DNA of 64,000 nucleotides from Epithemia pelagica (Eukaryota; Protista; Bacillariophyta). The translations under genes were made by a program, and so were the position numbers. The first letter of the stretch is position 1. Each line of letters starts with the position of its first letter. The notes beneath the pieces are model-generated. The model worked only from the letters and a program-made list of their open reading frames with translations, searched no databases and was not told the origin of the DNA. Of the stretch, positions 26,752 through 34,622 are shown one piece after another. The DNA is taken from positions 2,356,001 to 2,420,000 of the forward strand of contig OX337228.1 of NCBI GenBank assembly GCA_946965045.2, read 5' to 3'.

Positions 26752-26999
26752 GGGGGTAGAATACTTCATAACAGTGAACAAAGCGTATATATTGAACAGA
26801 CTACAATTTCTGTAACTTAGTCTCTGCAATCGGCCATATCAACCCAAACACAACTAGGCAAACACAAAAAAATCTCTCTCTTGGGTGTGTTTTAGAATGA
26901 TCCAAAACCACGGAAGGATTGTTAAACGACGTGTTCCACTCTAGAGAGGAAGATAAGGAGCAGTTCATTGTGAGCGTAGACCAACGAAAATCCAAAAAG

Positions 27000-27072
27000 T
27001 GGAGGACTTGGGAATCGAACCCAAGACCTTGTGCATGCTAAGCACACGCTCTACCAACTGAGCTAGACCCCC
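27000..27072 (-). tRNA. tRNA-Ala (anticodon AGC)
   Basis: The reverse complement GGGGGTCTAGCTCAGTTGGTAGAGCGTGTGCTTAGCATGCACAAGGTCTTGGGTTCGATTCCCAAGTCCTCCA folds as a cloverleaf with anticodon AGC and the G3:U70 alanine identity pair. Confidence 0.97.
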
Positions 27073-27941: not shown

Positions 27942-28313
27942 TTAAAATGTGATCGTCCTTGAGACTAATTTTGGCTCATCTGGAACTTTTTATACAAGCA
28001 ATTTCGATATCGTCCCGCACGTGGAAGTGACCAGCATGTGCGCGAGAAGACATTTTTCGCGCCTGGCATGCCTACAATATGATTATTTCCGTACCCCATA
28101 TCGCAATAGATCGCAATCTTTGAAATTATTGATAGAAGCTACGGGAAAAACGAGATGTGCATGGTTATCCAAGGGCATCCCTAAGGAGTCGCTATGTGAC
28201 TCCATCGTCCTCTAGTCTACAGCTTTGCGGCCTCATCACAATTCCACCGAGAAGACCAAGAGCTCTAGAGAATCAATTGAATGTAGAAACTAGTAGTCAT
28301 TGTTATATGGTAC

Positions 28314-30132
28314 CTAATTATCAAAGTCGTCAAAGTCGCTCACTGCTGTTGCTGTCTCCATGTTTCGATCCTGGTTCCCGACGACTGCAGTTCCCTCACC
28401 AAAGTGCTTCTGATAGAGCTGGACCGTCTTTTTCACATATTCTCGTGCAGCGTTTGCGTGAGTGGTGACTCCTGGAGAGCTCAAGTCCTTGTTTGCCTCA
28501 TCCAGACATTTTTCGGTGCTGAGTACAGCTTGCCGAGCCATCTCCATGCAAGAACGTGCATGCCCAGCGAATTTTGTGTGAATGTCGTTTGACATTTCTT
28601 GGGCTGCCCGAGCATGTGTCTCCGCCTCAGCCTTGGCTTGTTCCAAAGCATGCTTCTTGAGTTCTACAGATGCACGGAGAAACTCGACATCTTTCTTGCA
28701 ACTTTCGGCATACTGCTCGGCCGAGAGCATCTGCTTCACGGCCTCGGTGTGCGTAGATTGCACCTCTTCGAGGCGAGTCTTCAGCATCTCATTCTCTTGC
28801 ATGAGATCGTTGGCTGCAATTGTGGTTGATGTAGCGTTTATAGTGCGCGTACGCTTTGGTCGCTGATTGTTTGCGTTGTTGTTGCTTTTGTTTGCATCCT
28901 CCATTAGCTCATCTGTATCCTGCTGACTCGCCCATCCTCCGTTGCTCCGACAAACAAATGTGTAGTGGTCTGGCCCCACAGGCTTACGGAAGGTGTTGCG
29001 TTGTCCTTCACACTCTAACAGAAGAGCGCCACACCAGTATCCGTGGCTCTTCAGCGTCACACGATCTCCCTCCAGGCCCATCAAATCAAAGGAGTTCCCA
29101 ACTGGGATCGGGTCGAGCTGACAAGGGGCACTGAGGTTGATTGTCATGCTTGGCCGCATATCCTCCCCGGGCACGTTCGACCGCTTCTTCCATTTGTCCA
29201 TCTGAACGACCAGATTGGAGACAACAGGCACAGTCTGGAAGGGGTAGGTCTTCATCTCTTCAGCATTGCGGGGAGGCCCAATAGCTGTGTGGCCATACCG
29301 GTGAAGCTGGGCGAGGAACTTGACAGGAACAAACTGTGCCACACTTGTTGTTGCCTTTGGCCACTTCAGAGTAAGTTGGATCTCTGAGTTCTTCGTAATA
29401 GAGGGGGCGACTGCCTTTGCCTCCACCCCCGAAAGCAGATTCACTGCGACCGAGAGTCGCTTCTGCCCATCATGGGCTTTCCAAGATGAAAAGATCACTG
29501 GAAACGGGGATACTGGCCCATCAACCAAAGCCACCATTTTTTGGGGGGCTATCGACATCTTCTTCATTTTTTCGTCTAGGAAAGCATCACGATTGGGGGC
29601 ACTGTCACCCAGGACAACGTAGCCATCCCCTCCTCCCTCGCCTTTCCCCATGCCAGCACCACCTGTGCTTCCAAAGACCTGCTCCGCATAGCCGTCTTGT
29701 TGTTCCGCCCCGTCGTCTTCTTCCTCATTTTCGTCATAGCTCTCATCGTCGTCTGACTCCTCCACATTGTCACGAAAGGACGAAAACATGTTGACTGGCA
29801 CAACTGAAACAACAATGATGTGAGAAAGCTGCATGCAACTCAAAACACCAACAATCAAACACACCTGCGACAGGATTCGCAACAAGAGGAGGAGGAGGAG
29901 CATCAACTCCAAGAGCAGCAGTCCTCTCTCGTTCACGAGTGGTCTTCCATTTGGTTGTGAGTTCCTCACAACAAGCACGACGATAGAGGGTGGAAAATGA
30001 TTCAAAGTCGACTCCAAATCCCCCATTCTCATGAAACAAGTATTCAACATGGGCTTTGGAACACAAGTAAGGATCCCAAAGCCCATTGTCAAACCGCTGA
30101 CGCATTGTTTCAAAGACTTCTTGAAAACGCAT
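28314..30132 (-). CDS. Transposon accessory protein A (about 585 aa; helical N-terminal domain, acidic linker, HSP20/ACD-like domain, coiled coil); two exons
   Basis: Exon 1 30132..29865 (MRFQEVF...VDFESFSTLYRRA) joins exon 2 29803..28314 in frame through a 61-nt GT-AG intron 29804..29864. The segment SWKAHDGQKRLSVAVNLLSGV...IQLTLKWP resembles the matching segment of accessory protein C. Confidence 0.65.
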
Positions 30133-30646
30133 TTCACTAACAAAGAAGAAACCCAACAATCAGCAAGAAATGAGCTTCAGACGAGACAAAGCGTTTGATT
30201 GATGGATAGTAGCCGTGCGAAAGGTAGAGGCGCAATGGCCGAATGGAAAACACAAGATGAGACAAAATGAGATGCCGCCACCGTTTTTGTTGCAAAGTGT
30301 GTTCGCTCCACACAACCACACAGTAGTTTCTTCATCTCAATCACCCCGCTTGGTCGTGTCTAGTCGTAGGTATAAAGCGTCGAGACTTAAGCCTTAGAAT
30401 TGAAAATTTGTATGTGAACACCACGTCAACAGACGTTGGAGTATATCGCAAGAGGCATAAAACGAAGCCATCCCAAGGCAATATTTGTATTTTATATATA
30501 TTCCAGAAAGATCCCGGATGGGCCGGATTTGTACTATACTATTTGGATTACTCGTATGTGTCACTTTATGGTTCTAAAGTAGTGCGTATTATTGTACATG
30601 GGTCTCTGCCGGCGCTCTCGCACCTCCATGGCAAAACTATGAAACG

Positions 30647-31009
30647 ATGGGAATGGTGGATATCCATGATGTCCATGGGTATCCACCATTCCCATTATTC
30701 CGACGCCATTTTCTTGAGCTGTGGAGCTTTTCACTCAGAGCCATATCAGCATCCATTAGACCTCAATGCACCCTAAACATCGCCCAAGAGACATGGGATT
30801 GGGGCATTGTGGCTCTCAGGATATGCTTGGGAAAGTCGTGAAATCATCAAAAAAGCGTTGATATCCACACTTTCCCAAGCATATCCTGAGAGCCACGATG
30901 CCCCAATCCCATATGTTTCAAGGGGGATCTTGAGGGTCCATTAGGGTCTAACAGATCCTGGTGTGGTTTTGTCTGAGGTCCTTCAAGGCCTGAGAAAATG
31001 GCGTCGGAA
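30647..31009. repeat. Nested inverted repeats (foldback) in the transposon's divergent intergenic spacer
   Basis: 22-bp hairpin 30647..30668/30674..30695 (1 mismatch); 44-bp IR 30793..30836/30869..30912 (1 mismatch); 17-bp IR 30698..30714/30993..31009. Confidence 0.92.
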
Positions 31010-31236
31010 AATTCGACTTGTTGGGATTCCCAGTTTCCACGGGAAATCTGTGATTTTGTGAGTATCGTGGGTATCCATGGATATCCATCGGGTGTACAGA
31101 ATACTGATGTACACTACTTACGTATTCATAAGTTCTACTGTAGGTACTCTAAGTAGTGTGTCTTACCTCATCAACGATATCACGATTCGTCTTCAGCCTC
31201 ACACACAATTCTCCCAACAAGCCAACAAAAACGACG

Positions 31237-32160
31237 ATGAACGCCATTGCTCCAGAGCTGTTTCAGGAACTGGGAGCAAGCATCTTGCGCAAGAGAATCT
31301 CCGAGACGGAGACCTTTTGGCGTCTCTGGGCCAACAAGTTTGGGGCCTCGCCATCCATGTGCAGCATCCTATGGGTTCGTTTGGAGGATGCACGAGAGCA
31401 TGAGATGCCAAACAATCCACAACCCAAGCATCTTTTGTGGGCTCTCATGCTTCTTCGGACCTACGCAGATGAGCCTGATATGGCTAAGGATGCTGGAGGG
31501 GAGGATGGTGGAAGAGTGGACCCCAAGACATTTCGGAAGTGGAGCTGGCATTTTGTCCGTGGGCTTTCGTTTCTCGAACCGCTTGTAATTCGCTGGGAAA
31601 ATCGATTCAACAATGACATCTACAACGATTCTACAGTTTCTGTGGATGGAACAGACACGAGGGTTCCCAGTTATCGGCCCTTTTGGAAGGGTTGGTTTTC
31701 GCACAAGTTCAACGGCCCTGGAACTCGTTGGGAGATTGGCCTGTCCATCCGCAGCCGTGACATTGTGTGGGTGCATGGACCCTTCCCTTGCGGGCGTTGG
31801 CCAGATCTTAAAATTTTCCGCCACGCGATGAAGTCTTTCCTACATGACAACGAGAAGGCAGAAGCGGATGATGGATATGTGGGCGAACCTACAAAAATTC
31901 TCACGCCCGAAGTGAACTCGCGGACAGCAGCGGACGTGGAGCTACGACAGCGCGTCCGCAACAGACATGAAACAATCAACAGGCGCCTAAAGGAATGGAA
32001 GTGCATCAAAGAATGCTTAAAGCATTCATTGGACAAGCACTCTGCCATGTTTCGGGCAGTTGCTGTGATTGTTCAGCTTTCTGTGGAAAATGGAGAACTC
32101 ACTCTTTTCGACGTTGACTACGATGACAGACATATTTCGATGCCTGCTGGTTATGCTTAG
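31237..32160 (+). CDS. DDE_Tnp_4 (HARBI1/Harbinger/ISL2EU-type) transposase, 307 aa
   Basis: HLLWALMLLRTY...KTFRKW (HTH-like), SVDGTD, FSHKFNGPGTRWEIG, ADDGY, RNRHETINRRLKEW. First ATG at 31237. Confidence 0.9.
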   Translation: MNAIAPELFQELGASILRKRISETETFWRLWANKFGASPSMCSILWVRLEDAREHEMPNNPQPKHLLWALMLLRTYADEPDMAKDAGGEDGGRVDPKTFRKWSWHFVRGLSFLEPLVIRWENRFNNDIYNDSTVSVDGTDTRVPSYRPFWKGWFSHKFNGPGTRWEIGLSIRSRDIVWVHGPFPCGRWPDLKIFRHAMKSFLHDNEKAEADDGYVGEPTKILTPEVNSRTAADVELRQRVRNRHETINRRLKEWKCIKECLKHSLDKHSAMFRAVAVIVQLSVENGELTLFDVDYDDRHISMPAGYA

Positions 32161-32541
32161 GAGTAATAATACCTTCATACTATCCAATATCCAATCGCCC
32201 TACTCCCCATAACACACGCCTAAGATACAGCCATACAATGACTCATAGTAACTTGTGTAGGAAAGACAGACACTTTGAATGACAGCAAGCTAACTATCGT
32301 CTATATTCTAGTGCAGACAAAAACGAATACCACTGCCCATGATATGCCCTTCAAACGACCAATCTTGTCTTCACTTGAACCATGAATGAAGAATTATGCC
32401 ATCCACCCAGTATGGTCTCTCCTCTCTCCGCCTCCCAGATCCCAGAGGGACCAGATGGACTCATGTGGTTTTGTTGCTTTGGTGGCTCACAAAACGCCGA
32501 CTCCCAAACCGCAAGAGGAACGCAGCAAACAATCAAACAAC

Positions 32542-33471
32542 ATGGCAAAGAAATCTACAAAGGCTTTTAATTGGAAGGGGGAGCAAGGCGAATACATTCG
32601 CAAGCAGATTAGTGAAGGCAAAATGCCTCCTAATCCCTCCCGAGAACAGTACAAGGCAGTCTACGAAGCTTCGGAAGGAGAGGTGCTGAAGTTCCAGAAC
32701 TTCAGCTCCTCGTGGAAGAACGCCCAACGCAACCTGAAAGCTGCTGAGGATGTGGCTCTCTCAACGGGAGCCCGGCGTGGAGAGGCAGAGCATGTTGGGT
32801 TTATGTCTCCGGGGGGTGGATTGATGGGTCAAGCTGGTCGTGCCACTGCATTCTTTGGTTCTCCCACTCCTGGTGGTGCAAGTGTCAGCATGAAAACACC
32901 ACGCTCTGCAAAGACAGGGGGGACAAAGAAGGGTAAGATGCATGCCAGTGGAGACCTCTACTGGCCAACGATGAACTCTTATTGGCATGACAAGGACAAG
33001 AATCTTCGCCTTTGCTTCTTCGTTCTTCTTCCATCGGGAACACGGGCGGAGGATATGTCAGTTTCCATTGCTCCTGGTGGTATGAAGATTCGGATCGTCC
33101 ACAAATGGCCCGAGTATCTTTTCGATTCTCAGCGGCTTTTCGAGGGCCAGTTGGATCGTGGTGGTGGCGTCGCTTCTAATGCTTCAAGTGCCAAAGCTGC
33201 TGGCATCGTTGAAACAAAAGAGAAACTCAAACAGGATGACAGTAAAGTCGTCACCACCAACCTAACAATCCACCTAGAGAAGAAGGTCGAGAATAACATG
33301 ATTGACATCAAAGGTGATGTTGTGTCTCGGCCCATGTTCTACAAGCTCGATGGGGATGGGCCCAGTGGGGCTGCCTTACCTACACTTGTCATGCTCATTT
33401 CTTGCATGGTTGAGCGTGCAACTGAAGGATATGGTGGTGACAATGATGACGACGTTCAAGACTATGAGTAG
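32542..33471 (+). CDS. Transposon accessory protein C (309 aa; helical N-terminal domain plus HSP20/ACD-like domain)
   Basis: MAKKSTKAFNWK...LKFQNFSSSWKNA; YWHDKDKNLRLCFFVLLPSGTRAEDMSVSIAPGGMKIRIVHKWP...NLTIHLEKKVE. It ends about 80 bp before the right TIR. Confidence 0.7.
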   Translation: MAKKSTKAFNWKGEQGEYIRKQISEGKMPPNPSREQYKAVYEASEGEVLKFQNFSSSWKNAQRNLKAAEDVALSTGARRGEAEHVGFMSPGGGLMGQAGRATAFFGSPTPGGASVSMKTPRSAKTGGTKKGKMHASGDLYWPTMNSYWHDKDKNLRLCFFVLLPSGTRAEDMSVSIAPGGMKIRIVHKWPEYLFDSQRLFEGQLDRGGGVASNASSAKAAGIVETKEKLKQDDSKVVTTNLTIHLEKKVENNMIDIKGDVVSRPMFYKLDGDGPSGAALPTLVMLISCMVERATEGYGGDNDDDVQDYE

Positions 33472-34622
33472 AGAGCCTATAGCATAATTGATGGTATAAG
33501 AAGCTTTCCTCTAGTAACAACCCATGCGCTTTTGTCTAGGTATCTAGTAATATCCATGACATCTTATTTTTCCCGTAGCTTCATTTTGAATGGCACCTAT
33601 TTTAAGTTTTATTTACGAAACTTGACGAAGCTTGTGTTGAGTGTTGAGTCCGTCGTTGTCGAAATTCAGTCCAACCTACCTTCTTAGGTACAAGCGTCAG
33701 AAAATGCCATCGACATTCGACATGACATCTTTCACTTTTACGTTATTCTCGTACAAAGGTGAACATACAATGTCATGAAAACTTGTTTACCGGAAGACAA
33801 CACAAGTAGTTACTCCTATCATCTATCATCCGCCTCAGCTTGATTAGCCACGAAGAAATATCTGGAGTATTTAGTAAAGCTCTTATCATTGATCATCCAC
33901 AAGGGGCAAGGGATGTAGTCCGGCAACTCGGACTTGGAAGTAGTTGAATAATGAATAATAATATTAGTCCCATGTCTATGTTATAAGTTGTAATTTGTGA
34001 TGTTGCCTGATGCCTGATGACTGATGATAGTTGTTTATCACGAATGACTTGATCGCGCCATGCGTAATGATATCGTCGGGTAAGACACATGATTTTGACG
34101 TGATGCAAAAAGTAAATTGGATTGGGAATAGTCACATAGTCACCACAAATTGGAAGTTAGCAACAGATCATTGATTTCTTGATCTCGGGTTCAAAGTTCA
34201 AATTGTGAGAGAAGGACGAAAGGATATTCTATATTCCGTCTAGGGAAACTCGGGACTCGGGACCACGAGAAGCCGACCAATCGTACGCCTATGTCATACA
34301 ATAACTCTAGGAAATACAACAATATGTAGTGGAAGGCTGAGGTGTAGTCTACTCTTGAAGTCGCGGTTAGCACCACCCAGCGGGGGTGGACCTTCGAACC
34401 AACTGCGCTGGGGGTGTCGCGGATGGATGTCTGTCCGCGACGTGCGTACCCTTTCACAGCCATCAAACCAGTCGCTCGCCCCATTGCCTTCTCACTCCGA
34501 TGTGCAAAAAATGGAGGTCCTAGAACAGAGATCCCAGTGCACCACAGAAGTCCACTCAACAGTTTGTATTTGTCCGCTTCATGTGCGAACATCAAGAGCA
34601 AGAGGCAAACTGATCGCGACGC

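Follow-up and report, generated by a model that had tools for sequence, protein, structure and literature searches.

We analyzed a 64,000-nucleotide stretch of the diatom Epithemia pelagica (assembly GCA_946965045.2, contig OX337228.1, positions 2,356,001 to 2,420,000; "the window" below), in which a DNA transposon of 5,448 bp spans positions 28135–33582. PIF/Harbinger elements are textbook DNA transposons that need a second, Myb-like protein; zebrafish Harbinger3_DR and rice Ping/Pong encode a DDE transposase together with a Myb/SANT-like ORF1. Judged from its sequence, the window element is an intact, recently active, and autonomous PIF/Harbinger transposon of a diatom. Comparison within and between genomes indicates that its clade pairs the transposase with a protein resembling the alpha-crystallin domain (ACD) instead of a Myb-like one. 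This ACD-like protein is the regular accessory gene of the diatom clade, sometimes present twice, and the window family carries two, encoded by open reading frames (ORFs) A and C. The three ORFs described in the original prediction, and every peptide block quoted there, are present in the translations of the window. No paper on a Harbinger element with an ACD or HSP20-like gene turned up in full-text searches of incomplete coverage, so that the architecture, as the same prediction had supposed, is apparently undescribed.

The assignment to a Harbinger-type element with terminal inverted repeats (TIRs) was borne out by the transposase, the ends, and the target duplications. The transposase (307 aa, DDE_Tnp_4; 31237–32160, plus strand) passed the Pfam model DDE_Tnp_4 (PF13359) narrowly (E = 1.1e-5; 25.5 bits at a cut-off of 24.8). 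Its 288 homologues, many of them with PF13359, include proteins of Mayamaea, Amphora, Cylindrotheca, and Chaetoceros, and the catalytic-type triad D137, D211, and E245 was unchanged in 16 aligned transposases of 37–69% identity. The left TIR (28135–28158), with a GAAGCTACGGGAAAAA core, and the right TIR (33559–33582) form an inverted-repeat pair of 24 nt that is 92% complementary. A DNA search of the organism's own 60.5-Mb genome returned five full-length copies of ~99% identity, on contigs C1, C17, C7 (two), and C9; the ends of all five lay within one or two bases of these repeats. Perfect 3-bp target duplications flank four of the five copies (TCA, TAG, ACG, and AGA), and at the window copy the left triplet is ATA (28132–28134) and the right one ATT (33583–33585), with one mismatch.

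The copies differ by 15–60 substitutions over 5.45 kb, and their coding sequence is free of insertions and deletions. All three ORFs are intact in the window copy and in two others; one copy has a stop codon in ORF A and another lacks the ATG of ORF A. The host site of the window copy is itself another repeat (27946–28134 and 33583–33900). A paralogue of this repeat on contig 7 (L013, G000:C7:1716600–1717900), ~90% identical, provides an empty site, where the element is absent at the matching point (G000:C7:1717103–1717325). With five near-identical copies, three of them fully intact, the family is a candidate for an active element of use in diatom genetics.

The same architecture was found beyond this family. 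A second family in the same genome (L014), decayed and 72% identical at the DNA level, has 21-nt TIRs with a ACGGGAAAAA core and the gene order C, transposase, palindrome, A, as in the window element. Another diatom assembly holds a complete 5.7-kb element (L019) whose TIRs are related and which carries the full set of three genes; its proteins are 68% (transposase), 58% (C), and 48% (A) identical to those of the window. The core of the left TIR was retained in both. Between families, the proportion of synonymous differences (pS) is saturated at 0.65–0.83, and the proportion of nonsynonymous differences (pN) is 0.15–0.37 for all three genes, which indicates that all three were kept as proteins.

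ORF C (309 aa; 32542–33471, plus strand) starts in agreement with its homologues. It encodes an N-terminal three-helix domain (32542–32796), followed by a disordered linker and by an ACD/CS-like beta-sandwich in the predicted structure (~32941–33426). ORF A lies on the minus strand in two exons. The first (29865–30132) encodes an N-terminal helical domain, a paralogue of that of C, and the second (28314–29803) an acidic linker, an ACD-like core (~28812–29525), and a coiled-coil tail (~28392–28811), with the stop codon at 28314–28316. The tail gave weak matches to coiled-coil families in Pfam. A 61-nt GT..AG intron (29804–29864, minus strand) separates the exons, and its removal restores the frame. 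Introns of 60–71 nt with the donor GTGTGT sit at the corresponding point of ORF A in four other lineages (L014, L019, L021, and L027): the second family of this genome, a pair of loci from another diatom assembly, and one metagenome contig. Excision of the intron leaves an open frame in five of five lineages, as counted from stop codons in the joined exons. The support for expression and splicing of ORF A is thus comparative, drawn from lineages. The joined exons served for this count; the database searches took the exons separately.

Transposase and ORF A are divergent, and the intergenic region between them (30133–31236) contains nested palindromes at 30647–30695 and 30793–30912, with arms of 22 and 54 nt. 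In the second family, a palindrome with 159-nt arms of 97% identity stands at the matching place (L014 4890–5245). By this shared placement, the feature is conserved though its sequence drifts.

The resemblance between the two accessory proteins, proposed earlier for two blocks, is weak in direct comparison. BLASTP aligned A and C at 26% identity over 136 aa (E = 4e-4), and hhalign gave E = 7e-4. A profile built from C alone returned 88 of 1.84 billion representative proteins, and these include members of the A family, namely P0183 (E = 2.2e-7) and P0212 (E = 2.2e-4). P0183 links the two transitively: it aligns with C at 30% identity over 189 aa, across the whole core (E = 2e-14), and with A at E = 2e-37. 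The N-terminal domains are collinear and weakly similar (hhalign E = 0.0024 over 38 columns), so that the resemblance is significant through profiles for the core and weaker, in collinear order, for the N-terminal block. A phylogeny of 45 core domains gave SH-aLRT (approximate likelihood-ratio test) values of 99 for the A clade, 100 for the C clade, and 81 for their union. Their position as sister clades agrees with an ancient duplication within a transposon ancestral to these elements. By these sequence comparisons A and C are true paralogues, as the original prediction held.

For ORF C, the predicted ACD/HSP20-like sandwich was supported by structure prediction. An AlphaFold2 model based on a 64-sequence alignment of profile matches reached a mean predicted local distance difference test (pLDDT) score of 81.4, and in the two folded domains most blocks of 10 residues scored above 90. 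An earlier model from seven sequences had a mean pLDDT of 40 and was not used for the fold search. The model shows helices at residues 14–24, 34–43, and 54–83, disorder at 86–123, and a beta domain at 134–290 with an inserted helix; about 70 residues, this helix included, are inserted within the sandwich. Foldseek against the PDB placed small heat-shock proteins at all of ranks 1–10, with a probability of 1.00 and a best E of 1.4e-3. VIA-align against 48,161 chains returned ACD or CS domains in all of the top 29 rows, and unrelated sandwiches ranked lower. Small heat-shock proteins scored Z 11.1 (Hsp16.5), 10.2, and 9.4, and the Sulfolobus Hsp20.1 ACD (4rzk; Z 9.4) was superposed over 82 of 87 residues at a root mean square deviation (rmsd) of 2.3 Å and 18% identity. 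The ESM Atlas clusters nearest to ORF C belong to PF00011 (HSP20), so that the three libraries agree. The model therefore supports an ACD/CS-type beta-sandwich, as in the seven- to eight-stranded sandwich of ACD proteins, as the core of ORF C.

A sandwich of this kind could also be convergent or generic, in which case A and C would be lineage-specific transposase partners unrelated to small heat-shock proteins and the ACD label would be functionally empty. The borderline Foldseek E value fits this explanation, as do a TM-score by query of 0.24 and identities of 8–18% in the structural matches, the long insertion, and the lack of Pfam matches. We nevertheless regard it as very unlikely, for the top matches in three independent libraries were all ACD or CS domains, with unrelated sandwiches below them. 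Moreover, the best PDB sequence match of the family profile was the ACD of Sulfolobus Hsp20.1, at a non-significant E of 0.12, and two hallmark motifs ('G..eDi.v.v..gg..l.i' and 'i.LP..v.e') align collinearly with it. Common descent of the accessory proteins with small heat-shock proteins is likely. The canonical HSP20 genes of the genome lie at other loci: PF00011 finds eight other places, none of which is an A or C gene.

CS domains matched the ORF C model as well as ACDs did. PIH1D1 scored Z 9.7 (84 residues at 2.1 Å), Sgt1 Z 8.5, Shq1 Z 8.0, and p23 Z 6.8, and the CS matches at Z 8.0–9.7 had rmsd values of 2.1–2.5; the Pfam CS model (PF04969) gave no match. These scores, as high as those of the ACDs and at low rmsd, from the CS domains of Hsp90 co-chaperones would suit a chaperone-type role, in which A and C act as holdases that maintain transposase solubility or as CS-like adaptors that recruit Hsp90 for its folding or loading, and have no contact with DNA. 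Such a role is unlikely in our assessment, since sequence matches to the CS or HSP20 families were absent and the extra N-terminal helical domain and the coiled coil are unusual for simple holdases.

The association of the ACD-like protein with the transposase extends over the clade. The profile of the ACD-like domain matched the E. pelagica genome 78 times, and that of the transposase 131 times, which condensed to 113 main pieces. Of the 78 ACD-like matches, 73 have a same-clade transposase match no more than 5 kb away; the share of the genome that close, and hence the chance expectation, is ~1.9%. Among these 73, the two genes are divergent in 62 cases and in tandem in 11, the tandem ones being C genes. 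Each of six other multi-copy families sampled has an ACD-like ORF 1.0–1.6 kb from a clade transposase. At five sampled loci, the TIRs enclose only the transposase and the ACD-like gene (3.1–3.6 kb); the target duplications of these compact families were not cleanly readable from two or three copies. A nine-copy family with a transposase of ~364 aa also has the partner, which fell below the first threshold and is fused to an N-terminal domain. Mayamaea and a metagenome contig likewise have the partner next to related transposases; the contigs of distant family members were too short to show gene context. The partner proteins of the other families gave no Pfam match.

The 73 linked matches and the sampled two-gene families together show that the ACD-like protein is the regular partner in the clade. 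The three-gene architecture put forward in the original prediction therefore holds for the window family and its relatives, where a second partner gene lies downstream, on sequence grounds from an old duplication. It does not hold as a general rule, which is one ACD-like partner per transposase. A single solo homologue of C was found, in Epithemia; it is frameshifted. A reading of the partners as captured host genes was rejected on the strength of this copy and of the 73 of 78 family members linked to transposons.

The breadth of the partnership also bears on whether A and C could be anti-silencing or chromatin factors, which would guard the element against DNA methylation or heterochromatin instead of acting in cut-and-paste transposition. 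The precedent is in Arabidopsis, where the ACD proteins IDM2 and IDM3 are co-purified with the Harbinger-derived proteins HDP1 and HDP2 in a histone acetyltransferase complex (PMC5339849), and the ACD-like fold of ORF C is in keeping with it. However, direct contact of HDP1 or HDP2 with IDM2 or IDM3 was not observed in that work (PMC5339849), and almost all elements of the diatom clade have the partner, minimal two-gene ones included. Such near-universality is expected of an essential cofactor and not of an optional defence. We consider a role of A and C in anti-silencing quite unlikely.

We think it probable that this is a Harbinger element in which A and C are ACD-like transposition cofactors, standing where the Myb/SANT-like ORF1 stands in classical elements. 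The Myb-like ORF1 partner of classical Harbingers is restated in PMC5339849. We infer the cofactor function of A and C by analogy to it. A and C would fill its place and bind the transposase, and their N-terminal domain would perhaps contact the element ends or the internal palindromes. The ACD sandwich, together with the coiled coil in A, may serve as an oligomerization module, and the oligomerized partner could assemble the transposition complex, stabilize it, or carry it to the nucleus.

Several observations weigh against a cofactor role of this kind, or against the ACD assignment on which it draws. The Pfam HSP20 and CS models match neither A nor C nor 20 distant relatives, and with a best match to a solved ACD at the E value given above, homology to small heat-shock proteins is not proven beyond the shared fold. 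The core of ORF A is taken as ACD-like through its homology to C, the one protein that was folded. Among 27 N-terminal domains, Pfam matched none, and it detected no Myb/SANT domain in A or C. The fold of the N-terminal domain matched an FF domain at Z 7.0, a homeodomain at Z 5.7, and HMG-C1 at Z 5.8, values that fall inside the noise range for helical bundles. DNA binding by this three-helix domain is, on the model, a guess. The partners of the compact elements (197–229 aa) are without the N-terminal domain, which for that reason cannot be essential to the clade. Finally, none of the target duplications (TCA, TAG, ACG, AGA, and ATA/ATT) is TWA (TAA/TTA), the type typical of Harbingers. Further searches around these points yielded little: ESM Atlas feature searches with the C N-terminus and with the core of A gave nothing usable, and a profile search of PDB sequences gave no useful match for the N-terminal domain. 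Its identification as Myb/SANT could not be confirmed and remains a lead.

The more distant transposase families of the same genome (L035–L037) showed no ACD-like partner. One of them, with about eight copies (L035 2413–5845; G000:C5:1650000–1660000), has neighboring ORFs of 198 and 492 aa, in which neither a Pfam match nor an ACD-like signal was found; to judge from these neighbors, the partner in this family may be of another kind.

A few loci deserve separate mention. In Mayamaea pseudoterrestris (L022 741–6901), two ACD-like genes are followed by two transposases. The locus was considered as a three-gene element and rejected; its ACD-like genes are sister sequences (SH-aLRT 100), and the arrangement is more simply read as a two-gene element sitting inside the intergenic region of a second element. 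A 3.5-kb JGI metagenome contig (L026 1–3515) ends in inverted repeats of ~29 nt that enclose an ACD-like gene but no transposase; this is perhaps a non-autonomous element with the partner gene only. The right part of the second family occurs in three copies (L014, L015, and L016; G000:C11:2012500–2065500) that are 99.4–99.9% identical. The identity runs for at least 4.8 kb, past the element, and each copy has a 353-bp tandem duplication in the C gene. This looks like a segmental triplication with a spacing of ~19 and 24 kb. In the window, a tRNA-Ala(AGC) gene (26999–27072, minus strand) lies ~1.06 kb from the element, on its left side.

Should the partner be required for transposition, the cofactor slot of a cut-and-paste transposon would be refillable by an unrelated fold. 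In that case, a new, unannotated domain family would mark active diatom DNA transposons; at least 78 copies of it reside in the E. pelagica genome, and none is recognized by Pfam. A required partner would also offer a testable parallel to the plant complex of Harbinger-derived and ACD proteins. A more far-reaching version would make the link between Harbinger transposases and ACD proteins ancient and functional, with ACD partners as a second, undescribed class of Harbinger cofactors and the IDM complex either descending from or repeating such an assembly. This version we regard as a long shot.

Compared with known PIF/Harbinger elements, the diatom elements share a DDE_Tnp_4 transposase with the D-D-E residues, short TIRs, 3-bp target duplications, and a separate accessory gene, which in the diatom clade is usually divergent to the transposase. 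They differ in that the accessory gene encodes an ACD/CS-like sandwich, with no Myb/SANT domain detected, and the window family further differs in its two accessory genes and in duplications other than TWA. With small heat-shock proteins such as M. jannaschii Hsp16.5 and S. solfataricus Hsp20.1, the accessory proteins have in common the predicted fold and the two collinear motifs. Unlike these proteins, ORF C is missed by the Pfam model, carries the insertion of ~70 residues, and is fused to an N-terminal helical domain; A and C are encoded by a transposon, whereas the HSP20 genes of the host lie elsewhere. The CS domains of p23, Sgt1, Shq1, and PIH1D1 are equally good structural matches (Z 6.8–9.7), but they show no sequence match, and the weak sequence signal favors ACD over CS. 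As in the Arabidopsis IDM complex, Harbinger-type and ACD-fold proteins are paired, there within one assembly. The ACD genes of Arabidopsis are host genes, while those of the diatom clade lie inside the transposon itself.

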